From assembly GCA_964247055.1 (NCBI GenBank), contig OZ176054.1, forward strand, positions 11,470,001 through 11,534,000: a stretch of 64,000 bases of DNA, in the 5' to 3' direction. Position numbers and translations under genes: made by a program. Below are positions 30,545 to 50,525 of this stretch, piece by piece; positions within the stretch are counted from its first letter, which is position 1, and each line of letters opens with the position of its first letter. The DNA comes from Paragordius varius (Eukaryota > Animalia > Nematomorpha). Below the pieces are notes generated by a model. That model worked only from the letters and a program-made list of their open reading frames with translations, had not been told where the DNA came from and did no database searches.

Positions 30545-33500
30545 ATGGCTAGGTTCCTAAATTCTATGATTGTGCCGGCAAGTCAACATACTCTATTTAT
30601 GAGAGGGTTTTCTGGAACAATGGATAAAGAAGATATAAGGTCGTTTTTTTGTTTATTTTTAGGGATTTTTTTACGAAAGAAGGTGGAAAATGCTCATTTG
30701 ATTTTATTAAGCTCTCCGATGACAGACGATTTTTGTTTGTAGCGTTACGGTTTGAAAGTAAAGATGTTGCCAAAGAAATGTTAGCTAGGTAAATCTTATA
30801 AATTTTATTTTAGATATAATGAAACGGAAATTTTGGGTTGTCATGTATCGATAACTTGGTACAAAGATCTTAGAAAAGCGCGTCAAAAAGGTACAATATA
30901 TTTACTGCTGAATATGCCTCTTTTAAATTTGCACCTTACTTATGAGTTATCGTGAATGTGGTACATAAAACCATGATATATGATCTCAAATCTTAAAAAA
31001 TATGATGAAAATATGTATATGTGATTGATGTGAATTTACACGAACTATAATGTATGATACTGAAGTCATGTTAGTTTGTCTAACCAAAAAATTCGTTTGG
31101 AATCATAAAATCTTCTGAATCTTATGATGCACATATAATATTTGTGCGGCAAATTAATAAAATTTTAAATTATTTGATAACTCCTACATTGGTAATTAAT
31201 CTAATACTATAGAGTGTATTATCGACATTATTTTATAAAAAGTGAAATTTTTTGTCTATTTATTTAATTTTTAATGTATTTTTTATTAGCTTTTGATGCC
31301 ATGAAGGATAAACGTGAATCACGGTATGATAAAAGACAGTCACCGTCCCGAAAACGGTCCACATCATCCAAGTATTTAATATATCTATATACTGGAACAA
31401 TTTTTTTACAGCCGTTTTGAAACCAAAATTTTCGACAAAAACACAGTTCCATATACGATTGATAAAAAATAAAATAGATAGCTACAAGTTCCTTTTATTT
31501 TTATATTAAGGGCCCAAAAAAGTTTTGAATTAAACCAACCTCTTTATGTATTTTAAAAGTGCATCTAAAACGTTTTCTGTAATTTTTTCCTATAACCTAC
31601 TTTTTTAGTGATGATAAACAACGAAGCCCTTCATCCTTTGATGAGAGAAATAATGACGACTCTCAAGATAACGATGAGGGAATGGATAAAAAAAGAGCAG
31701 ACGAACCGGAAGAAGAGGAAGAAGGAAGCGAAGAAGGTGAAATCCGCAACAAAGAGGACGATGAACCCCGATCAGCTGTTGACGGTCGCCATGGCAACAA
31801 TACCGATGATGATGGTCGCTTTGGTAACAACGTAGATGATAAAAAACGACACAGAAAAGCGCCGTCTCGACGTTTTTATAACACACGCTCTTCTGCGGCT
31901 AAACGGGCAGCTGCTCGAAAAAGTAGCAGTCGATCAGCGAGTCCTCCTACATCTCCTGCTCCCCGAAGCAAAAAAGACACGACGGCCACTGTCAATGGAT
32001 ACACTAGTGGTAAGTAGAGTTAGATAATAAGTCTAATTTTTTTGTTTCCATTTTGTCAAGACTATCATTAAGCAAAACTTTTTAAAACATATCCAAGTTG
32101 TGTGGTAAAAAATTACAAATTACATTTTGATTTTTATGCACATAAAATAATACTTCTCTTTATAAAAACCTATTTAAACCTCTTTACAAATATTTTTTTA
32201 TTAGGTTTCGAGATGACATTTTAAGCATATTATAAAAGTGACATTAATTGAACAATTTCATTTTTGAAACATGGAATAATGCCCCCCTTTAGTACTTTTG
32301 TGATAAATGTTTAGGCATTTATATTTTATAGTTGTAAAATTACCTTATATTTAAGATCATAACAAAGATGAAACTGGGAGTTACGCATCCTCACATGGTC
32401 CTACTAGTCCAGAACGAAAACGGTCAATGTCACCCAATTATTCATCTACAAGACGAAGAAATGTTTATAATTATCGAGGTGGAAGTAGAGGTACTGTAAA
32501 AAATAATTTTTTAGTTTTTCTGTTTTTATTAAAAATTACACTTTTTACTATAATATAGGTCGTCGCGGAACTAATCGAGGCTTCAGAGGCGGTTATAACT
32601 ATTCGCAATACTCTAGACACGGAAGAAGGTAATGATAACTTTAAAATTGTCGACTGATTTTTGCATTTTAGACACTTTATTTTTTAAAAGATTGAATATA
32701 AGCATAAACAGCAAGATTTATTAAGATTATCACGAAAAAACCCAAATGAATAAAAATGATTACCACATGGTTAAAAAAATATGGAATCAATACACCATAT
32801 ACCACCTTTGATGAATCCTTACTGTGTGACCTACACATATTTTTTAACCATGTACTAATCATTTTCATTTGGATCATTTGTTTTTTAGTGATAATCATTT
32901 ATTAATTTTGTTGTAAATAATGCTTTACCTATGAATGTGCCACTTGTAGGCGTTTTTTTTATAAATAATAGCGAAATCTTTTATTAACATTTAATCTTAA
33001 AATAAGTTTTAAAGTTGTTTTTTTCTTATATGCAACCTAATCCCCGAATTATTTATACAAATGTAAAAGCTGGTGAGATAATTTATCCAAATTGGATTTA
33101 AAATAAACCACATTTTTGACCTGCAATAAAAAATCATTTTAATAAATTTTTTTGCATATATCATATTTTTATGCACAGAGGCGCCCCAAAAACACCATCG
33201 CTTAGCCCCCCACCCCTGGATGATGAGGCCGAAAATACCACATCAGCTCAAAATAAAGGAGTAGAAACAAATGACATGTCTGCGAGAACCGAATCAAAAT
33301 CTAAATCGAATTCGTTCAACACAAGTCATAACGCTAATATTTCTAATTCAAACACCAATGCCAATACCAACAATAATCGTGATATCGAATCACCCCTCGA
33401 TGAATATGAAGAAGATGAAGAGGATTTACAAAAACTCGGCTTGCTTAAAAACATTAATGCCGCGAATTATAAGGCAAACGCTAAAGAATCTGCCAATCAA

Positions 33501-36500
33501 GCTTCACTCCATCACGATGAACCACCTCCTCCCCCTCCTCACAAAGAAGATATTAATGGTCCAATGGAAAAAAGTACAACTAGTGGGATACGGTATCACA
33601 TAAAGGGCCTGGCGACGAACAATAAGAGCAGTAGCACAACGGTAAAACTTTAATATTTTTTAATCAATATAGACCAACAAAAGTGATAAATGTTTTTTTT
33701 AAAAAGAACCCTTATTTTTTTGAGATCGATTTATTTTGCCGTTCTTTCTGATATATAAAAAGTTTATTAAACTTTTTTAATGATTATTGTTATAAAAAGT
33801 AAAATATATATATTTTCCATGATATAACCATACCTTGATTTTTTGTTAATATAAACTATTTCTTATATCGGTTGCGATGAAATAAGGAATAGTTAAATTC
33901 GTACAACATACCACATATAGGAATTACAAAAAATGACAAAAATAGGAGTTGTTATAGGAAAAAAATATTTGTCATTTACTTTTTATTATAGTTTTGACTT
34001 TAAAATTGTAATTTTTACTGAACCAATCAAGATTAATCAGAATCACAAGTACCGTGCTGAAGGGGAGGGATGGAATATTTCCATTTCACCATCTAACAGA
34101 AAATCAGCATCTCCTGGATCTCACCACCCTGCTCATAATGAAGCCGGTGGTGCCGAAAATGATGGAGCGTCTGATGCAGAATGTAGTAAATCTTATAAAT
34201 ATATATATAATTTGGAATTTAAAGAAGAAATTTCGAAATACATTTTTTCTGTGTTGATGAATTGTGGTAATGGTATAAATAATGTCGATAATTAAAATAT
34301 TACAATTTTTTTGGAGAGGTTTTTAATTTTGGAAAAAATTACTGTTTAAGTCCCTTAATCAATATATAATATATTACAGAGGGAAAAAATGGTAAAATAG
34401 GTAAATTAAATAATTTAGGTCTATTGCAAATTTCATCCCAGAAACATCGTTGGCTGTTTTATATGTTTAGAATAAAAATGTTTAATGGCTAAATTAATTA
34501 AGAGCGAATTTGAACTGCATAAGGATTAATTTAAAGTTAGCAAGTGGCTATGTAATATGAAGCGTTTAAAGTTTAATTGCAAGTGTAGAGAATTAATAAG
34601 TTTCAAATAAATTATAAATGATCAAGGTTGAACTTGGTGCTTAAGGGTTTATTAATCAAAGATATATGTTCAAGTTAGTTTTAAAAAGGTCAAGGGTTGA
34701 TTTTTTAGCGGACATGCATTCTTCTCTTACCGCTTCGAGCGTGTTGAATTGTTTAAGGGTAAATATTGAAATTTTATGGTTAAAGTTATACGAAAAAATT
34801 TGAAGTGCATAAGAAAAGAGTTTTTTTATTTATAAATGCTGTATATTTTTAAAACCTCAATCAGTTTTTATCATATATAAATCGCTTATTGTAAACCCTT
34901 TGATTTTTTTATCCTAGATCGAGATGAATCACGATATAAACATGGAGGATCAGGGAGCCATAAACAACGCAATCATTCTCCGGTATGTTTTTTTTATTCC
35001 CTTTTTAAAACAATAATATATATATATATATAATAACCTATTGTTTTGGCCTACGAAATGAGTAAGGGCCATGCATTTTGATAGATTATACATTTAATAA
35101 TGATAAATGTTTTATAAATAGTAAAAGTATGGCTGTTTTTATGTAATTTATAATTTTTTTAATTTGAAGTCCCGTGGAAGTTATCCTCATTATAAGGGCA
35201 ATCGGGATCGATATGCAAGTATGAATGGTACGGCTGGACATCATAATAAATATCGCTCATATAATCAAAGGTAATATATTTTTTATAAGTTCTTCACTTA
35301 TTATTGTTAACAAAAGATTACTTTATTTTAAAATAAGGCACACCGGAATTAAAAGATTTTTTGCAGAGCCGTTTGAGAATACATTTTTTTCAACTTAAAA
35401 CCGTTAATTTCAAATGTGTTTATCTAGGTTTAAAATTATACAATTTCACTATAATGTCATAACTAGGTTTTTTTAAATTTTATAATAAAAGGTTTTTAGT
35501 TTAGTTTTTAGAAAGGACGCTTACAATATATTTTAGTGTATTATGTTTTTGCGGCCATATATTAATATTCTTTTATAATGGGGATGTAAATTTAAAATAA
35601 CTGAAATATAAGGAGTATTTGACTACAAACAATGGAGAATAAAAACTAAAAACTTTTTTTTCCAAAAAATACTATAATTATATTTTTTGCTAATTCATAA
35701 TATATATTTATATCCTTAATATAGAAAAAGTGGAGAATACAGACAAAATAATACCTCCTCAAATAAATATGGTGTTGAAGACGAAGGCGGTAGAAAAAGT
35801 ACAATGAGTGGCGTTCCTCATAAATTTGCTAATCGGGGAGGAGCTGGAAAAGGGAGACGTAATATTATATTTTGCTTTTTTGGATATTTTTTATCATTAT
35901 GCGTGAATTTTTAAAATGGTTCTTCTAGTTTTAAATTATTATCGTGTTTTTTATAAAGTTGTAGCATATCTTTACACACACACTCACCGATGCGTGGCAC
36001 AATGAACAAAAAAAATTATATTGATTAATAATGATTATTGGAAAAAACATAATATTAATTGAAATTAAATTAAAAGATTTATTATTTCTTAAATAATTTG
36101 TAAATGTTAAGCCGTATATTTTTTCAATAGAGGGGGTCATTATTGGCCAAGGTGTCAACTGTTTTCATATTTATCTTTTTTTCAGAAATAATTTTTTTAC
36201 TCAATATTCATTAATTTTTTGGGGGGACGTAAATATGTTAGGTTATCCTACCAAAGAATATTCAGATAGATCAAGGTCCGGTTCAGAAACTCGTTTATAT
36301 CATCACCAAAGTAAACGCCATCACGCATCCTCTGATAAAATGGGTAATATGGCTGGTGAAACCTATTCTAGAAGCCAAAGTCGTACACCCTCTTCGCCTC
36401 GGTTTTTACATTTATTTATATTTTTTTAGAAGATAAAATTGATATAAAGACAAAAAATTGTTTAAAGAAATTTTTTAAGTTTAAGTTGGAATATAATTGC

Positions 36501-39500
36501 ATTTTTTAATTAATACTCAAATGTATAAATTTAATTATTATAAAATTTTTAAACTCAACAAGGTATGATCTCCTTTAAAATCCCTATAATCTTTATATTC
36601 ACATGACACTTTTAATATTTTTTGTTTTTATCAAACATTTAATTAATTATAAATTAGTGGGCCTCCTGATCCAGAAAGTCTTAAACTTGGATCCATTTTC
36701 AAAAAGCAAAAAACTTTGGAGGAATTGGCAAAACATAAACAACTCCAATCTCAACAACTGATGATGATGGATGCTGCTGCTAAACAAAGTAAATAAATTT
36801 ATATTTTAAAAGATTTTTTTGTTTAAAAATTCTACATTGATGCAATTATTTGAAAATAACTGGATTTTTTGAAAATAGTTTGATTCATAAACATATATAA
36901 AACTTGTTATTATAAAATTCTTAAGTATTGTGGTCTTACAAGCATTAATAATTTGAACTAAATTTTAATCAATTTATCTTATTATTTGAAATTGGATTTA
37001 TGTAGGTTAAACTATTTAATATTCCGTCTTTGAACAATTACGGTGAGATAGGGTTAATCAAAAATATCAAATTTATAATTTGTTTATAATAGACTATTTT
37101 GCCGTCAGAGTAATCGTATTTATTTTTTTTATCACTAGGTGGTGATCATCAATTTGCCAATAATCCCGAATCTGAAAGTTTTCTTAAATCAGCCATGGAT
37201 ACAGCAAACACCGCTTCTGTCAAACGTTTCCAAATGTTAACTAATCCCTCTTTAGCAAGTATATATATTATAGTTATGAATGAGTTACATAAAACAGCGT
37301 TTTTTTAGATGTGTTTTAAAAGAGTACTACTAAAATTTTAGCGTAAAACAGTTAAGTTGAACGTTTTTTTATAAGACATATATTGCTTATGATACCACAT
37401 CATTGACCGACTCTTTTTTTGAGAAATTAAATTTAAATTTTTTAACCGTCATATTTAAAAAATGATTGGAAATACGGTAGCCGAAAACGTGTACATATTT
37501 TGTCCGATATAACTACAAAACTGCCAACAAAGTCTTATAGCCACCTCCCCGCGGTGTCGGATGGGGCATGTAAATGCGCTAACGGCAAAGGCGGTTTCTA
37601 ATGATATGTAAAATCATTATTTGTACACAAGGGCATGTGTACTACGTAAAAAAATCGCCTCAGATAACCACGAAGTATAAATATTATGAATATGAATTAC
37701 TTCATGGTAAGAATTCCGAATTCGGAGTCCTACCCTTTATGAGATAACTACGAAACTGTGACTTTTTTTAGAAAAAAATTATAATATCATGAGACAGTTT
37801 TAGCGCCCTTTATTTATTAAGCTCATTCATTATAAGAGCGCTTTTCTGTATTTTAAAAGTGGTGTTTTCATTTTATTATGTTTTAATTCTAAAGAAGAAA
37901 GCAATTATTACGGCAATGATACCGCAATAAATATTAACAAGAGTATGGAATCGAATAATAAGTCTGGACAAAGCGGTGCTTCTCAATCCTCGCAACAATC
38001 CAAAATAAATATTAACTTTAAAAATTTCCAAAGCAATTACTCCGCACCCGATGATATAAATATGAATACGATGGAAACTCAAAACTTTAATAATTTTAAT
38101 GCTTCTTCCAATATCCAATTATCGGCTCATGATGCTGAAATGTTGGTAGCTTCAACAACCACAAATTATAAAAATCAAAGCAATATTAATGCACCCACTG
38201 CTTTGTTGGATGATTTTGATGGTTTCATTTTTTTATTTTTTGGTTGGCCTTTTTAAACATTAAATATTTGGTAAAATTATGAAGATAAAACATTATAAAA
38301 AGTAAAAGATAAATAGTCCTTTTTTAAGGGAAATAATTATATGTTTATAAACCTTGTTAATACCGCCTATCGTTTTGGGGGGAATGGAGATATAAGTAAA
38401 ATAAAAAATATGGGTGTTTTTTTAAAAAATATTAGTTTTTTATTTTTCGATGCATAATTGTTCTTAGTTATAAACTTTCGACATATTAACATTAAACATA
38501 AAAAATTTTTTTTTCATTATTATTATATGTTCTATATTCAATATTAATATTATTTAGGAGATGATGATTGGCGGACCATGGCAGGAAAATTTTCAGGGAA
38601 TATGAACAAATCAGGAGGAACCACTGTAAGTACGGCCGATAAGCTTAACCAAGAATTGGAAGCTAGGTATTTTTTATAATCTATTCCCCAATATTTGCCT
38701 AGACTTAAATTTAAGGATTCAAATTCACAGCCATCTTAAACACACCTGTTTGTATCAAATTGACGCATTAGGAAATCTTATTATTAATGCAGTTCATGAC
38801 CGCATTATATCCAATCATTTAAAAAGCTTAAGTACAATGTATTTAAAAATAGGACTTAATCCGTTAGCCTATTGAATTTATACATATTTAATGGATTATG
38901 TAATTGACTGGTAAAATTTTATAATCGGCCGAACCAATTTTTATTATTTAATCGGTTTATAATCCTTATTTAAACAATATACATAGGCTTAAAGAAGTCT
39001 CTGGAAATGACACAAATGTTGCCAATCAAAATAAACGCAAACGCGTAGAATCTGCTGAGTTTGATTCGAATGATTTGATGGATAATCAAAATACTAACCT
39101 ATCCTCTAAAAATATCTCATCGGGTTCAGGAGGGGCTTATAAATTCAAAACACAAGCTGTGGTCGATACATTTAAACATTATTTAGAACAAGTTATTATT
39201 ATTGCGTTATAAAATTTGTAAAACCTTTACTCATACTCAATATACGTAATTTTATATGGTTTAGGCTTACAGAGAGGATTGCAATACATTGTATGGAGTT
39301 TCCAAGGTTCTCATGTAAGTATTTGGCCATTTTAACATCAGTTTTTGCTTAATCATTAATTAATTAATATCATTTAAAATTAATTATTTTGTGAACGGTT
39401 TTAAAAATTATAGATGTGATGATAATTTGCGCGCCTCCATACTCAAAAGCGCTGACGATAATGTTAAACAATTGGCTTCTAAAGCGTTGAATGATCTTGC

Positions 39501-39543
39501 CGACATTTTTAAACGTGTCAAAACTCAGACAATGGAGACTTGA
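30545..39543 (+). CDS. 1043-aa protein: N-terminal RRM, long RS/RG/acidic low-complexity region, C-terminal Periphilin-like helical domain (20 exons)
   Basis: Phase-consistent GT-AG model totalling 3132 nt: 30545-30639, 30663-30788, 30814-30890, 31290-31371, 31609-32009, 32356-32490, 32559-32628, 33179-33641, 34032-34182, 34918-34982, 35170-35270, 35725-35858, 36242-36401, 36658-36788, 37139-37258, 37895-38221, 38558-38666, 38987-39191, 39265-39314, 39414-39543. RRM HTLFMRGF..FVALRFES. C-terminus LEQAYREDCNTLYGVSKVLI resembles PPHLN1 IEQVYRQDCETFGMVVKMLI. Confidence 0.8.
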
Positions 39544-42183
39544 ATAGAAGAATATACCCATCTATCTTTATTTAAAAATAAACACTTTAATCTGTTTTCT
39601 ATTTCGTTCATGTATATAATTATAAATGTTTATTATACTTTATATTGCATATTGTATAAATGGTCCATTACCTGTTATTATTATGGTAAATTATATAAAT
39701 ATGTATTTGTTTTTTTTCAATATGAAGTTAACATAAATTTGCGTAATAAAATGAGAATTTGTGAAGTTTCATTAGTTCCAAATTGAGCCGATGGCGTGCA
39801 ACGGCTAAATTTGGCCGGATGGTTAATATTAAACCAATGGTCTAAGCGTTTAATTAATCGGCAAGCCGATTCCAATTTTTATAACTGATTTAATTTAAAT
39901 CAAAGAATTCGTCAATCGGATGTGTTGCTCTATTACCATAAAAATAAAAAATTCCTCTGAAGGGTAACCACCTTTAAAAACAAAGTTTCCTCTGAATACA
40001 TTAACGTTAGCTTGCAATTGTTCGACGATCCCACTACCTGGATTTAAGAAAAATATTAGTATTTTCTTATGGGTTGCTTAGGCTTTACGAGTGATAAAAG
40101 AAAGTTATTACAACTTTTGTGGTAATTACTTCTAAATGCCGAGCGCATATTTTTCTAAATTATTTATTTGCTAAAGCTAAATGCTAAAAACAAAAAATAT
40201 CACTAATAAATCAAAAAATATATAAAGCAAAACAATATATTCATATAATTTCAGTTGTGGGCTCCGAAAATCAAGTTTTTGGACCCGTCTGAATTTGGTA
40301 ATTTTCTCAAACTAAAAGCAAAGATGCCGATATGTACGATAAAATTTTTAAATATATTCAAATTTTGACATCAAAATTAGTTTTTTTTCAAAAAATTGGT
40401 TTTTAAAAAATAACATTTATAGCAAAATTTTGGTGAAATGAGTTTAACACATTTTAAAGCATGATGGAAACTGTAAAACACTCTAGATATTATAGAAACA
40501 CTTCTCTACATCATTCGATTATGCTGAACATTATAAATCTTCACAGATATTGAACAAAATACTTGTTCGCCGATAAATTCAATTATACAACATTTATAAA
40601 TTAAAAATTTGTGGTGTCATAGAAAACAGTATTTTATTAATATATTAATACTTTGATATAAATTGGGATAATTAACGACTCTAAATCATATTTATTTGAT
40701 ATTGTTAAACAAATTGAAAATAACGGTTCCCACTGATATTTTGCTATATAAAAAATATTTAAATAGGCCAAAACACATAAATAAAATTAGGTTTTGTCAA
40801 AAAATCTCAACTTGAAATTTCGACGTCATTTTTATTTTATATTTTTGGAAAATCTCGTGTTTTTTTATTTTAAGAAACTTTTTTTCATTTAATTAATTTA
40901 ATCAGAAAAAGTGGTTTATGCATTATTTTACTATACACACTGTCTTATTGGCTATTACCTTCCGGGTAATCCATAAAAGTAAATACCAAGTATTTTTAAA
41001 TGTACCTTTTCTTATTTTTAGGTAAACCAATATTATATAAGTACAAAATTTTGCAGTCCTTATCATTTTATTTCATGTTTTTGAATGTTTGATTTTAAAC
41101 AGGCCCTTGCTGTCACCAACGACCCCTATTTGAATCAATAGACTGAAATGAATGATCCAAGCATTATGGTTATTTACCGTTTCCACCATATTTCAATATA
41201 CCATAAAAGTTCATCAAAATTTTGTTAAAAATTTAATTTTAAAGCAAACATCCATTATTTCGGAAATTGTCAAAACTTAGCACATATTATTTATTATTAT
41301 GCATTATCAGAATTTTCGATTATAGTTCAAGAAAACTTTCCCATTTTAACGTATTAAAGATATCAGACTTCAAAATATACTAAAATTAAAAATTTTGTAA
41401 AAAATTTGTTTAAATTTTTATATATAGTTTATGGTATATTTTAGTGATATTTTTTGGGAATGAAGCATTAAGCCTTTACCTAAAAATATTATTTAACAAA
41501 TATGAGTAAATTTTGTCATTTTCCGATATTGAGCAGTTTCCACAAAATAAGGCCAAAACCAAAAGTACCATGATAATCCTGATTATTGAAATATTATTTC
41601 ACCAGGATATTTTTATTCTTAGATTTTATGCGAGGTGCCTATCAAAGAAGCGATTGCCTCGATGTTCATTGCATGTATAGAGATTGCGTTAGGCGCTAAA
41701 ACATATTATCTTTTTTACAATTATAATGTCTTAAAGGTATAAAAAATTGGAAATATGTTTATCACAAAAGGAACAAAAATAAAATAATATGTTACAAAAA
41801 CTTATTAATGGTTAAAGAGCTCAGGCCATAGAATGCAAATTTATAAAATTTAAAAGCAAAAATTTGATTTATTTCATATAATCATGGATAATTGGGGTAA
41901 TTTATTTCAAAAGATAATAACGCAATTTTTTATTGTAACCAAAAAAATTATAAGGTTAACACGTTCAATTTAATTTTTAATCGATTCACACAACGAGTAA
42001 GTATTAATTATTTATATTGACTATGCTAATAGCTTACCTATCACAAACTTACTATGTTACAACATCAATTAAATTTTCTGCGTAGACTAATTTACGACAA
42101 AATTGAAATATACATATTAAACGTAAAACTAAACAAGACAAATATTAAAATGATATTGTATTGGTAAATGACGGATTGATTAT

Positions 42184-43943: not shown

Positions 43944-46900
43944 TCATTTTGAAACAAAATTGCTAAAATCAGTTTTAAGCGTAATAGTGGGCACGTTATT
44001 ATGTGTAGAATTAGTATTAGAAGCTACACCATTCGTTAAATGGTGAGTAGTTGAGGATGAATATAAAATAAATTTTTCGAAAGACACCTTTATATGTTCA
44101 TTGTTTTGTAAAATGTGCTTAAATATTTCATTGTATTGAGTCGCAAACAATGTTAAAATTTCGATTATTGCTTTTCGTATAGATTCAGTTTTGATTTGCC
44201 GATTATTATTATCAGCATCGTCATCATCAATTTTTGCAATAATTTTAAAGCAAAATGACGAGAGAAGGCATAAAAAGGTGGTAGATTGCGCTGGACTACA
44301 TCTCTTAAGACAGGAGATAAAATAAACAAAATAATCCTTTATTAGATGAATGTAGATATCATTAATTGCTTTCAATGGATGATTTACAATTGCGTCCATT
44401 TCTTTCAAGCATGAAGGTAGGATGGTTTGAATAAAGTAGAGAAAAATTTCTTTGGGCACAAAATCGATCTCGTTGAGTTTCGTTAAAAAGGATAAAATAA
44501 CGTTGAGAGTTTGTAGATGTGTTTTATTAGGAAACTCTTCAGTAGTGGCATTAGTTAAAGAGGAATTAATTAACTTAATATATTTATCAAATATGCCAAT
44601 TAATTCACGGGTAAAAAATGTACTACATTCACCCAAAGATTGAGATTCATGAAACATTTCACAAAGTGAAAACGTAAGGTGAAAAAATGGAATAATTGTT
44701 TGTAAGGGAGAAGAATCTGGGCTCTCATTTCCACCCTGATAAATTGTATTATATAAGGCTGCAACGATTACAATATATTTTTCTTGGTGGGAAAGATCGA
44801 TTTGAGTTTTATGAGTTGAAGCCGGGAAATTTAGATAGATACACTTAGCTATGGAAGATATACACATATTAGCTAGTGAATTAATTGATGAACGTATCGT
44901 TGTATATCGGTATAATTGATACAATTCATTCAGCGATATTATAAATATGGGCGATACATCATTTTCAACCTTAAAATTATTCAATAATATAAGTGTATCC
45001 ACTGCTTTTATAATTAATCGATACACATCGTGTTGGGACAATTTAGTTAGTTTTTGCTTGAAAATACGCTGTAATATGATTGAGATACCGATAATGACGT
45101 TTTTAAAGTCTGATGTTTCAATATCATAATCGCTCTTTTTGGTTATAGAAGTTATGAATGATTGAAGTATTACCAATACTTGAAAAATAACTTCATTTTT
45201 GTCTTCAAAAGCAAGAGTAAGTTTGTACGATATTTGAAGAATTTCCGACAAAATTTTGGGGTGATTAATAATTATAGGTGTCATAAAGTCCATGTTTAAA
45301 AGTAAATTGTTCAAAGAATCAAAGCATGCAAATAATTCACTTTTACGTAATTCAAGTGCATTATTGCACAGGGCATGTATCACAGTCCCCAAAACCAAAA
45401 AGGCTTCATCAAAGTTTACAGGCTGATGGATAAAGTACATGCTTAAAGCTCTACAAATTGATGCCCACATAGTACTATATTGTTCGTGTAGTCCTCCCCC
45501 TCCTCCTCCTAACGACTTTGTTAAAAGGGTTTCTGTCCCATTGTTGGGAGAAACAATTTTTTCAATAGAATGATGTTTAAGAAAATCGATCCAATTTGCG
45601 TATAAATATTTCAAATCTGATGTTTTGATTTCATAATCATTAATTGGATTTGTTTGTCGCGCGCTGGAAAAGTATATAAGAGAGTAGGCATGCAATATGG
45701 ATATTTTTTCCAATTTAGAAAACTTTACGTCCTCAGAATTTCTTAACGAATCAAAAAGTACTCTAAGGTTATTAGCAATGGTTTGGGGTATTGGATATGC
45801 ATTTGTTATACATTGACTGACCCATCGTCCACAAACATAACAAGCCATTGCTGTAATTAAGGCATTTTTCTTAGCAAACACATCGGTACTTTTATCGTTA
45901 CCATCGAATGTTGGCTTATCATCTAAAGGTATTGAAGATTTAAGAGATAAAGCGAAGGCTGGCTTTAAGCAAGCTCCTATTTGTGCCTCATATTGCTCAA
46001 GAATACAGTGATTTGACGAAAATTTGTCCCCTCGATCCTTTTGAATGTTGAATGCATTTTTATCAATGGTATCAACTGATTCATAAACGTTTTCAAAGCT
46101 TTCTAAAATAAGGGATAAAATTTTTAGACCCAGAACAGAAAGGGTAACACAAGTTTCAATATTGGTGACACATAGGAATGATATTCGCAATAATTCGTTT
46201 AAATGTTGGACAAGAAAATTTTGTGTAGTGCCAGATTTATGATTGACTGTATAATGTGGACCCTCATATTTATAATGATTATTGATGGTGGATATAATGA
46301 GAACGAGACATCGGGCACTTAATAACTTGGTGTCGATTGAAAATGGAACATTATTATTTAGCAATGTTGGACCCAATGTTATTTCCGAAAATTTGGAGTC
46401 TATATCATCATCAACTGTAGGGGACATAGATTCACCCATTTGTTGATTTTTGGAAAGGGGATCTAATTGTTTAGAGCCTAGAATGGTTTCAAAGGATGTT
46501 ATATAATCATTTAAATGGTTGTCAATCATGGTAATAGTTGTAACCATTTCATATATAATAAATTTAGATTCCGTTTTAACTATCATGTCCTCCTCTTGAT
46601 TTATATTGTACAAGAGATATTTTATAAAATTATTGTTATTTTCTTCGATATCACTGGATGCGTTTCTAAACCAAACTGATATTTTCGAATAATCCTTAAA
46701 GATTATTTGTTTAAGCAAGATGAGAATTTTGCGTCGTAACAAAGAGTATGAACTGTTATAATTATGTTTGCAACTAGAGAGTATATCATCTAATTGGAGC
46801 GGACTTGACTTAACATATATAAACAGATAATACATACATTCAAACGCTTCAAGTCGTATAAAATCATGATTATTATTGTTTAAAACATGACACAAAGTAC

Positions 46901-49900
46901 ATAAAAGCGATTTAAGGTAGCTAGTGTGAGTCAAGTTGTTATTTAATTCGGGTCCAACACACCCAGTTATGGCACTTATACAGCAGGCATAAGCCCAAGT
47001 TTCATAGGTAGGATCTGATGTGCTATTCAAAATACTTTGAGAGAAATTGAGCAACATAGGCTGTATTAAGTCTTTAATATCATCATAAACGCAGGACTCA
47101 ACAATAATTGCCAAACTTGTTAAGGACCAATATCGAATGTGCATGGAAACGGGATCAGACGATAAGGTAAGCAATAAGTTAATAGTAGTCTTAACCTCCA
47201 AATTTGATGCTTTGCCATTAGCTATGATACAAGCAAGTTCAATGATAAAAGCCGATCTTTGTGTTGGCTGAGTTGATTCTTTACAACCGTCAAAGGCAGT
47301 ATTAAATATATCTTTAGCATTTCTTTGCATTTTAACAATTTGGCCAATAAGCCTGGCCGACGAATAACGTAAAAATGGAGAAACCGAAGAAAATAATGAA
47401 TCCTTAGCAAATTTTACCAAAAGTTTATATTCCTCTTCTGATGCCAGATACTTGCTTGCTCTGCAACCGTACAAAGAATAGATAAGATTTAACCTCGATA
47501 TAAAATAAGGGTCATATCCAAAAACATCTTTTACATTTTTGAGTAAATGATTACACTTATTTTCTTCAATCTGTTCCCCAATCTTGATTAATGTTAGGTC
47601 AAAATGTTTTAATATTTGTAGCTTATGTTTATCTATGATATAAGGATAAATGTGTTGGAAACATTCGATTGCAGCTGACAACAGTCTTTGAGATATTGAA
47701 TGTGAAGTGCTATATACCCAAGGTTCCAATAAAATTTTTTCAAACTCGTTATCTTCCTTAACATGGGTCAACCAATGATTGGCCAAAAGATTTAAGGGAG
47801 ATGTTTTCTCATTTGTAAAATCTAAAGATGTTTGACCCAAATCATCATTTATTTTTTGATCATTTTCATTGGCATAAATAGGGCCTTTTAGATGCGTTTG
47901 GTCATACGAGTAAGTCACTAAGGGGAGACAACTATCATGTATAACGGTATTACAGTTGTTATTAGGAATACTAATTAAGGTAATTGGCAATAAGGCACTA
48001 ATTTCTCTTATATAAATATAATCTGTATCAATTGACTCAACCCCATTACATTTGGCTATGTTTGGAGATATGAGTAATTTTATAAGTGAATCAGGAGATT
48101 GGGTTATTTCAATAATGAGTTCACGAATCAGTATATTATATTGGTTATCCAGTGTTGAAGGGCGTAAACAAGTTAAGATTTTGAAAAACAATGTTTTTGC
48201 CTTAACAATCATGCATTTGTGTTGGAAATTATTAGACATTAGAATTTCACCGATGTTAGCAAAGGATTTTAAGACAAAACCTAACAATTCTTTAAAATCT
48301 TTTTCATTATCTACAAAACATTGCTTATCATATTTTAAACAGACATAGTGTAGATGAGACAATGCACCATTGAAATTTATTATAACTAACGGTTCTAGGG
48401 GTCCTTGCTTTTTTTCAATGGTAAGCGCCATATTCCAATATTTACGCATATCTTTAATTAAATCTTTGAAGTAAGTAAGATGCACCAAGCAATTAGCGAT
48501 TTTCCAGGATACTTCACTGTAATTTTCTGTTTCGATGCTTTTGGTAGCAAACGATACGTTTAATGCAATGAAAAGATTGAAAACCTTGTCATATGTCAAA
48601 TACACTTGATTTGGATAAAGTTCAACCGTGCTTTTATACAATGAACAAAGATGTACCATCGCCCTTGCATATGCGTGAACATACGTGGTAAGCGTCCCTG
48701 TTGTTGCATGATTGGACAAATTTTGTGATTTTAAAACTGACCAAAAGTACTTGAGATAATCGATTAACAGAATTGAACCCGGACCTAGGGCTTGAAAGAG
48801 TTGACATTGGCAATCAAAAGCAGACTTTCGAATGGCTGAAAATGGCATTCTCTGACCCCTTATCCATATATGATTTTCTATCGTTTGATTCATGGTGGTA
48901 ATAGTGTTAAGGATAGCTGGTCCGATTCTCTCTATAAGTAATGTTAAAGTTTGAAACATCAAAACTATGGTATCTATGATGCCTAAAAAATTTTCACAGC
49001 TGCAGATATCTTTGTTGATCCCGACCAGCTTTTTGGTTAACATAGAATGCACAATGTTAAAACAAACGTTTAAATCACATAAATCTTGGATTAAATGTTT
49101 GCAAACATTACGCATGATAGTTAAACCTATTTGTTGATGAAAAGCATAAAGCGTAGGAACGACGGCTCTTGTTTTAATATACGATGAGTTATTGTCTAAA
49201 AGACAAAAATGTTGAATTACGAAATCGAAAAGGTGATAAAAGTAGGTTACATAATAACTCACTCCTTCTGCATCTTCCAAAAAGTTTTTCACATTTTTAT
49301 GATTGGTAGAAGCAGTTGGCAAAATCAAATGAGGTTTTTTGCTCAATAGCAGCTTCATAAACTCCAAAAGTGCATATGATACACCTATTAGGGTTGTTTT
49401 ATAAACCGTAAAGGTGGACTGAATATAATTCAGAGGGTTATTATATTTTGAGTTGGCAGCGTCGCCACCAACCTTAAAAAGTGGCACCAATGTAAAATTC
49501 GTCAAATTTTCCACTTTAGAATTGATATTAGTGAGTTTTGTCAAACAGGGCTTAAATATGGTCAAAAATCCGGATGAAATAGTTTGAGGTTTCCATTTCA
49601 CGGAATTTTCTTGAATCATATCCTTGTCTGGAAATACCGTTTTAAACACTAAAAATGCAATTAATTTGGAGGTAGCTTTACGAACAAAGTAATCGGCATA
49701 ATCAAACAACTTATAACAATGATTCAATATTAGATCAAAATCATTCATTATAGTGCATCCAACCTTGGGGACATTTAGAGACAATAATATTATCTGCGCA
49801 GAAAGTATTTGTAAGGATGGGTAAAACCCTTTTTCTTTGTCCGTGTTGTTAAAAATATTATTCTTAAAAACTATAAATTTATAAACATCCAAGTATAATT

Positions 49901-50525
49901 GTGGTTTTATATCTGAAGAATTGAGGAATAGAGTTTCAAACACTTGAAGTATTGCATGTAAAAACGCTTCTTTTTCGGAGCCATCTTTTTCCAATAACTT
50001 TTTATTGATAGGACTTTGGCTTAATAAGGAAGATATATTTTTAGATAGCTTGATACATGTGCCCATCAGTTCTTCTAAATTGGTCGTTGATATTTTTACA
50101 GTAGTAATTAACTTAGATAAAACATTAAGGGTGAATAATTTAGCCATAAAAGGATTGTATAAATCATTTAGCGATTTTAATTCTTGTTGCGCATTGAATG
50201 GATATTCATTGGTAGCTTTAAGTAGAATCATAGATTTATTAAAAAAATCCAAAACCAAAAATGAATCTTCACATATCCTAAATAGATTGGCTAAACGATT
50301 GGTTATTGCCATATTAATTATCTTTCCGTTAAAAACGCCAGTAAATATAATTTGACATATCTGTCCATATAATTTGGTTTGATTCAGTTTTATATCAGAT
50401 TTATCCATGGTATATATAATTTTATCGAAAAATTTCGTCCATTCATAAATATATATTGGTTTTCGATCAACATTCAATCCAATAAGAATGGATTCATTAA
50501 GAAATAGGCTTTGACAATATTCCAT
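43944..50525 (-). CDS. HEATR5B: HEAT repeat-containing protein 5 (HEATR5A/B, Laa1-like), 2193 aa, single exon
   Basis: Uninterrupted 6582-nt ORF. N-terminus MEYCQSLFLNE..RKPIYIYEWTKFFDK matches HEATR5B MELAHSLLLNE..KRPVFIFEWLRFLDK. Internal matches include ILEQYEAQIGACLKPAF and AITGCVGPEL. Confidence 0.93.
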   Translation of the reverse strand: MEYCQSLFLNESILIGLNVDRKPIYIYEWTKFFDKIIYTMDKSDIKLNQTKLYGQICQIIFTGVFNGKIINMAITNRLANLFRICEDSFLVLDFFNKSMILLKATNEYPFNAQQELKSLNDLYNPFMAKLFTLNVLSKLITTVKISTTNLEELMGTCIKLSKNISSLLSQSPINKKLLEKDGSEKEAFLHAILQVFETLFLNSSDIKPQLYLDVYKFIVFKNNIFNNTDKEKGFYPSLQILSAQIILLSLNVPKVGCTIMNDFDLILNHCYKLFDYADYFVRKATSKLIAFLVFKTVFPDKDMIQENSVKWKPQTISSGFLTIFKPCLTKLTNINSKVENLTNFTLVPLFKVGGDAANSKYNNPLNYIQSTFTVYKTTLIGVSYALLEFMKLLLSKKPHLILPTASTNHKNVKNFLEDAEGVSYYVTYFYHLFDFVIQHFCLLDNNSSYIKTRAVVPTLYAFHQQIGLTIMRNVCKHLIQDLCDLNVCFNIVHSMLTKKLVGINKDICSCENFLGIIDTIVLMFQTLTLLIERIGPAILNTITTMNQTIENHIWIRGQRMPFSAIRKSAFDCQCQLFQALGPGSILLIDYLKYFWSVLKSQNLSNHATTGTLTTYVHAYARAMVHLCSLYKSTVELYPNQVYLTYDKVFNLFIALNVSFATKSIETENYSEVSWKIANCLVHLTYFKDLIKDMRKYWNMALTIEKKQGPLEPLVIINFNGALSHLHYVCLKYDKQCFVDNEKDFKELLGFVLKSFANIGEILMSNNFQHKCMIVKAKTLFFKILTCLRPSTLDNQYNILIRELIIEITQSPDSLIKLLISPNIAKCNGVESIDTDYIYIREISALLPITLISIPNNNCNTVIHDSCLPLVTYSYDQTHLKGPIYANENDQKINDDLGQTSLDFTNEKTSPLNLLANHWLTHVKEDNEFEKILLEPWVYSTSHSISQRLLSAAIECFQHIYPYIIDKHKLQILKHFDLTLIKIGEQIEENKCNHLLKNVKDVFGYDPYFISRLNLIYSLYGCRASKYLASEEEYKLLVKFAKDSLFSSVSPFLRYSSARLIGQIVKMQRNAKDIFNTAFDGCKESTQPTQRSAFIIELACIIANGKASNLEVKTTINLLLTLSSDPVSMHIRYWSLTSLAIIVESCVYDDIKDLIQPMLLNFSQSILNSTSDPTYETWAYACCISAITGCVGPELNNNLTHTSYLKSLLCTLCHVLNNNNHDFIRLEAFECMYYLFIYVKSSPLQLDDILSSCKHNYNSSYSLLRRKILILLKQIIFKDYSKISVWFRNASSDIEENNNNFIKYLLYNINQEEDMIVKTESKFIIYEMVTTITMIDNHLNDYITSFETILGSKQLDPLSKNQQMGESMSPTVDDDIDSKFSEITLGPTLLNNNVPFSIDTKLLSARCLVLIISTINNHYKYEGPHYTVNHKSGTTQNFLVQHLNELLRISFLCVTNIETCVTLSVLGLKILSLILESFENVYESVDTIDKNAFNIQKDRGDKFSSNHCILEQYEAQIGACLKPAFALSLKSSIPLDDKPTFDGNDKSTDVFAKKNALITAMACYVCGRWVSQCITNAYPIPQTIANNLRVLFDSLRNSEDVKFSKLEKISILHAYSLIYFSSARQTNPINDYEIKTSDLKYLYANWIDFLKHHSIEKIVSPNNGTETLLTKSLGGGGGGLHEQYSTMWASICRALSMYFIHQPVNFDEAFLVLGTVIHALCNNALELRKSELFACFDSLNNLLLNMDFMTPIIINHPKILSEILQISYKLTLAFEDKNEVIFQVLVILQSFITSITKKSDYDIETSDFKNVIIGISIILQRIFKQKLTKLSQHDVYRLIIKAVDTLILLNNFKVENDVSPIFIISLNELYQLYRYTTIRSSINSLANMCISSIAKCIYLNFPASTHKTQIDLSHQEKYIVIVAALYNTIYQGGNESPDSSPLQTIIPFFHLTFSLCEMFHESQSLGECSTFFTRELIGIFDKYIKLINSSLTNATTEEFPNKTHLQTLNVILSFLTKLNEIDFVPKEIFLYFIQTILPSCLKEMDAIVNHPLKAINDIYIHLIKDYFVYFISCLKRCSPAQSTTFLCLLSSFCFKIIAKIDDDDADNNNRQIKTESIRKAIIEILTLFATQYNEIFKHILQNNEHIKVSFEKFILYSSSTTHHLTNGVASNTNSTHNNVPTITLKTDFSNFVSK

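Follow-up and report, generated by a model that had tools for sequence, protein, structure and literature searches.

Within a 64,000-nucleotide stretch of the genome of the hairworm Paragordius varius (contig OZ176054.1, the fifth contig of a 110.5-Mb assembly in 44 contigs; hereafter the window), positions 30545-39543 of the + strand hold a series of short open frames with coding character, which most likely belong to one gene. We propose, with a probability of about 0.45, that this single gene encodes an RNA-binding scaffold of the Periphilin/Lge1 type to which a divergent RNA recognition motif (RRM) has been added. The product would be a nuclear protein of about 1025 aa with three modules: an N-terminal divergent domain of the RRM type, approximately 850 aa of hydrophilic low complexity, and some 70 aa of C-terminal amphipathic helices, which may represent a diverged helical hairpin of the Periphilin/Lge1 type. 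Nuclear RNA would be bound by the RRM together with the arginine/tyrosine-rich disorder, which would also self-associate, and the C-terminal hairpin would form dimers and attach the protein to a partner that is itself helical. That the protein is homologous to Periphilin, dimerises, binds RNA or has a part in silencing is what we infer here, and these points are weighed below against the rival readings of the same exons.

C-terminal helices and their likeness to Periphilin

The 3' end of the gene comprises three exons and a downstream hexamer.

38987-39191, + strand: exon 18, a disordered asparagine-rich part and a basic KRKR patch, with the first C-terminal helix beginning at about 39144
39265-39314, + strand: exon 19, with 16 codons and a further 2 nt; it holds the central part of the Periphilin-like motif, where helix 1 ends
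39414-39543, + strand: exon 20, the turn and the second helix, with the stop codon TGA at 39541-39543
39577-39582, + strand: AATAAA hexamer, 34 nt past the stop, a candidate polyadenylation signal

The GT donor of exon 18 is in phase 0 and opens a 73-nt intron (39192-39264, with the AG at 39263-39264; read directly), and exon 19 is followed by a GTAAGT donor at 39315 and a 99-nt intron (39315-39413, with the AG at 39412-39413). Once these two GT-AG introns were removed, the C-terminal peptide quoted in the original prediction matched the DNA exactly (39144-39540, + strand). The hydrophobic residues of the last 75 aa are spaced by 3-4 positions, as in amphipathic helices, and exon 20 is single-copy in the genome. 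The KRKR patch (39033-39044) is a possible nuclear localisation signal. The AATAAA hexamer is a weak candidate for a polyadenylation signal, since such hexamers are common at the G+C content of this AT-rich window (approximately 28%).

Human Periphilin ends in a helical hairpin (residues 292-367) that lies behind a disordered region rich in S, R and Y, and mutagenesis placed L326, L333 and I337 at its dimer interface and showed L356 to be needed for TASOR binding (Prigozhin et al.). At these four positions the hairworm protein has L, L, I and L, respectively, in an alignment made by eye with a single one-residue gap in the turn. The human sequence used in it has L, L, I and L at positions 326, 333, 337 and 356. 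Part of that sequence is confirmed by a 14-residue motif from Brugia, printed in PMC3050887, which is identical to human Periphilin at 12 of its 14 positions; 6 of the 14 residues are common to the hairworm tail and the human/Brugia motif. By eye, the two also share a Y-R-x-D-C-x-T stretch that stands directly before the region of the printed motif.

The likeness to human PPHLN1, a subunit of the HUSH complex, also extends to the position of the domain: the putative helical domain of the hairworm protein, like that of Periphilin, measures about 70 aa and closes the chain, with long disorder ahead of it that is rich in S, R and Y and in acidic residues, and by eye the two share a motif that runs from the last part of helix 1 into the turn. 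However, the hairworm protein is nearly three times longer, its N-terminus is RRM-like, and its turn is shorter by one residue. A folded RNA-binding domain is absent from human Periphilin (Prigozhin et al.), which the original prediction had described as lacking an RRM. Two Periphilin-like proteins have already been recorded from the sister phylum, the nematodes, namely A8PSR3 from B. malayi (PMC3050887) and Y57G11C.9 from C. elegans, given by WormBase as the PPHLN1 orthologue. Both are uncharacterised, and the comparison with the hairworm protein covered the printed 14 residues of A8PSR3. We counted this nematode precedent in favour of the Periphilin reading, and the same two records weaken the earlier suggestion that a Periphilin in an invertebrate would be new. 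Overall, we regard the Periphilin likeness as a good lead, drawn from comparison by eye rather than from a test.

Gene model and the modules ahead of the helices

The remaining parts of the model are as follows.

30545-39543, + strand: whole gene model, a curated exon chain in frame from ATG to TGA
30545-30639, 30663-30788, 30814-30890, + strand: exons 1-3, divergent RRM-like domain at approximately residues 16-95
31290-31323, 31609-32009, 32356-32490, 32559-32628, + strand: exons 4-7, an acidic block followed by RS- and RGG/Y-rich low complexity, from open frames and splice-site pairing
33179-33641, + strand: exon 8, longer than any other exon and rich in S, N and P, with one acidic patch
34041-34185, 34918-34982, 35170-35270, 35725-35858, 36242-36401, + strand: exons 9-13, disordered blocks rich in R, Y, S, G and H
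36658-36788, 37139-37258, 37895-38221, 38558-38666, + strand: exons 14-17, hydrophilic and S/N/Q-rich, with the least certain borders
37401-37800, no strand assigned: repeated element in the intron between exons 15 and 16, where the contig depth in sequencing run X3 is 63-124 as against about 5 elsewhere, with many loose ends

The N-terminal domain appears to be RRM-like but divergent. At its 5' end the gene is interrupted by two GT-AG introns of very small size, one of 23 nt (30640-30662) and one of 25 nt (30789-30813); its later introns measure 68-732 nt. Only after removal of the two tiny introns is the order of an RNP2-like strand, a helix, an RNP1-like strand and a final strand seen; the unspliced reading through both of them has no RRM-like domain. 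The joined 99 aa were scored with a local script against a hidden Markov model trained on 19 RRMs of this genome, each contained in a single exon, and they reached 8.4 bits over profile positions 6-65, a score that was exceeded by 1 of 5000 shuffled sequences. The RRM exons, searched singly in Pfam, had no match, and the locus was not among the 91 matches of the genome-wide scan for RRM_1 (PF00076).

In a sliding-window profile, only residues 1-95 and approximately 955-1025 had the hydrophobicity needed for folding. The intervening 851 aa are hydrophilic, with 13.6% S, 10.7% N and 7-7.5% each of K, G, A and R, and include blocks rich in R, Y, G, S and H, an acidic block and the KRKR patch. By this composition and the profile, the C-terminal domain is preceded by long disorder in which S, R, Y and acidic residues abound, as has been described for human Periphilin. 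The original prediction had called the disorder RS/RG-rich, a description that holds for the R/Y/G/S/H blocks and is less apt for the middle as a whole, in which S and N prevail. Its general architecture, with an RRM-like start, about 850 aa of disorder and a helical C-terminal end, was reproduced in our 20-exon model. Exon 8 matched no Pfam family and a word search with it found no relatives, and the pieces from exons 14-17 likewise matched no Pfam family.

The sequence, a splice-compatible reading along it and the layout of order and disorder are direct observations. The curated chain of 20 exons runs on the + strand from the ATG at 30545 to the TGA ending at 39543 and comprises 3078 nt of coding sequence in frame, in which every intron is of the GT-AG type; its 1025 aa are slightly fewer than the approximately 1043 aa first claimed. 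Splice sites were picked to keep the frame, and an in-frame chain is by itself no proof of a single gene. An automatic model obtained by dynamic programming had the same first five and last three exons. It was dropped because it took hydrophobic alternative frames in 32408-33072 and extra exons at 37632-37706, inside the repeated element, and at 38731-38838. Exon 6 has a weak acceptor at 32356, in place of which 32413 might be used.

Comparison with close relatives bears on the coding character of individual exons. In the relative represented by run X3, exon 13 (36242-36401) showed four differences, all four at third positions and synonymous, plus an in-frame insertion of 3 nt, which favours the R/S-rich frame as the coding one. 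In the same relative, exon 18 carried five non-synonymous changes and one synonymous change within its disordered part, and none was listed beyond 39126. The runs that contain the locus derive from DNA of this organism or of very close ones, and none of them is catalogued as RNA. No splice joints were found at the locus in runs X3 and X6, which are low-coverage DNA from close relatives, and two further runs that we guessed to be RNA (X7 and X8) contained nothing of this stretch.

Two intronic stretches stood out in the same data. The stretch at 37401-37800 has the appearance of a dispersed repeat. At 35136-35165 the contig depth in run X3 was about 227, with small insertions behind 35146 and 35150; this stretch adjoins a skipped repeat (35006-35040) and probably represents a further short intronic element, either repeated or of low complexity.

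Searches and rival readings

Several results weigh against an RRM-bearing relative of Periphilin. No significant score was obtained anywhere for homology to Periphilin: for the ungapped 21-residue core, a hand calculation with BLOSUM62 gave approximately 23 bits and a pairwise E value of about 0.03, uncorrected for the fact that the comparison was freely chosen. Database searches were run exon by exon. Ten pieces compared with Pfam returned nothing relevant, and the two usable C-terminal exons (the 17 aa of exon 19 are below the usable length) gave only chance or repeat-motif matches in a sequence search of the PDB, with no Periphilin among them. A six-frame scan of the whole genome with PF11488 (Lge1), a profile that covers the Periphilin C-terminus as well, left the locus unmatched. 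A phmmer search of 1.84 billion representatives with exon 20 had a single match, a bacterial NACHT-HEAT-repeat protein. Word searches were blank, both for the exon 18 open frame and for exon 8. At the other end of the protein, the RRM probably lies under the Pfam cut-off of 20.7 bits. Finally, no RNA links the RRM exons to the C-terminal exons, and the borders of the middle exons are uncertain, especially the weak ones at 36658-38666.

Each exon covers only 16-35 of the 71 positions of the PF11488 profile, so the blank exon-wise results carry little weight and a miss was to be expected. The human Periphilin-1 structure is PDB entry 6SWG. The ESM Atlas gave no usable match. Two matches to PF11488 elsewhere in the genome (15-16 bits) were judged spurious, one of them lying in a long open frame resembling helical repeats and the other in a 135-aa frame without Lge1 features. 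The bacterial NACHT-HEAT protein was also rejected as a homologue, its likeness being only to the HEAT repeat unit. The likeness to Periphilin claimed by the original prediction was thus upheld by eye, and now includes the four residues probed by mutagenesis, but it found no echo in the exon-wise profile and sequence searches.

The model could instead have wrongly joined two neighbouring genes that share a strand, one of the RRM/RS kind and, downstream of it, another with the helical end. The exon chain has no RNA support and its splice sites were chosen for frame, the borders at 36658-38666 are weak, and there are several internal ATGs, all of which would suit such a fusion. However, the exons are evenly spaced on one strand with gaps of at most 732 nt, no gap looks intergenic, and the composition is continuous along the model. 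We consider a junction of two genes to be very unlikely.

A chance resemblance deserves more attention. The gene may encode a lineage-specific RNA-binding protein of the SR/RGG type, for example a splicing or messenger ribonucleoprotein factor, in which the likeness of the helices to Periphilin is fortuitous. The exon-wise database results were blank throughout, amphipathic helices easily share their spacing of L and I, and an RRM with an RS/RGG tail is a very common layout. Moreover, exon 20 also resembles a HEAT-repeat unit, which indicates that such helices readily find look-alikes. Nevertheless, the match includes, by eye, identities at non-hydrophobic residues (Y, R, D, C, T, K, D, S and N), it occupies the same extreme C-terminal place with the same kind of disorder ahead of it, and all four residues tested by mutagenesis appear to be kept. 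This explanation is unlikely in our view, although it has to be taken seriously alongside the Periphilin/Lge1-type scaffold that we favour.

Other known proteins share parts of the layout. Yeast Lge1 has a sticky disordered region rich in R, Y and G, followed by a C-terminal coiled-coil that binds Bre1. The hairworm protein resembles it in the R/Y/G-rich disorder and the C-terminal helical part, but Lge1 has no RRM. Tas3 of S. pombe, a component of RITS, is largely unstructured, has self-associating C-terminal helical repeats and has been likened to Periphilin in the literature; it differs in lacking an RRM and in that RITS acts with Argonaute, and the likeness is one of description only. Proteins of the FUS family and of the RBMX type combine a folded RRM with self-associating low complexity rich in R, G, Y and S. 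However, their RRMs are canonical and they have no Periphilin-like C-terminal hairpin.

HUSH, genome setting and significance

The original prediction had proposed a silencing factor of the HUSH type, and in that case the protein would be the RNA-binding subunit of a HUSH-type complex, docking on a TASOR-like protein to silence retroelements. Such a role would be consistent with the four interface residues kept by eye, including the leucine that contacts TASOR, and TASOR-like proteins with a DUF3715-SPOC-DomI architecture have been reported in invertebrates. However, HUSH has been described as vertebrate-specific, and genome scans gave no match to TASOR DUF3715 (PF12509) or to PIN_TASOR (PF24630). 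TASOR_alpha-beta (PF23314) had a single match of 16 bits in the genome, which was judged spurious as it adjoins a MutS-like gene. The genome thus holds no credible TASOR match, which counts against extending the Periphilin reading to HUSH; these scans proceeded exon by exon in a very divergent genome and are insensitive, so that the blanks do not establish the absence of TASOR. As matters stand the HUSH-type role is unsupported, and we consider it improbable. A HUSH-like function is speculative, and the locus is not yet evidence for an invertebrate HUSH.

At the site of the rejected TASOR_alpha-beta match (G000:C3:8259000-8268999, L036, minus strand), the exons resemble a gene of the MutS family, with a Walker-A-like GSGKS motif and a conserved block after it.

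It is also conceivable, but in our judgement highly improbable, that Periphilin ancestrally bore an RRM and that the hairworm keeps this form within an RNA-guided chromatin-silencing module, whose TASOR-like partner would have diverged beyond the reach of exon-wise scans.

The neighbouring gene on the minus strand (43944-50525) is a 2193-aa single-exon open frame, which has ordinary stops and matches HEAT repeats of the Laa1/Sip1/HEATR5 type (Pfam E value 4.9e-15). The tiny introns had raised the possibility of a ciliate genetic code. This was ruled out because a standard-code open frame of such length occurs in the same window, and we accordingly used the standard code. The only relatives found for this neighbour were fish HEATR5A/B, at 22-23% identity, with no exact record of the protein, which illustrates the strong divergence of the proteins of this genome. 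A synteny route via the HEATR5-like neighbour returned no hairworm relative.

The value of the finding is limited in that nematode Periphilin-like proteins are already in the databases, homology is so far only proposed, and the exon-wise scans found no TASOR partner. It is still being studied how Periphilin, which lacks a folded RNA-binding domain, recognises RNA. If our reading is correct, the fusion of a Periphilin-type tail to an RRM in an ecdysozoan would be relevant both to this question and to the vertebrate specificity of HUSH. If, in addition, the ancestral form were confirmed, surveillance of the HUSH type would predate the vertebrates. The fusion would suggest that the docking hairpin and RNA binding had been linked long before HUSH, and the hairworm protein would offer a simple construct with which to test that link.

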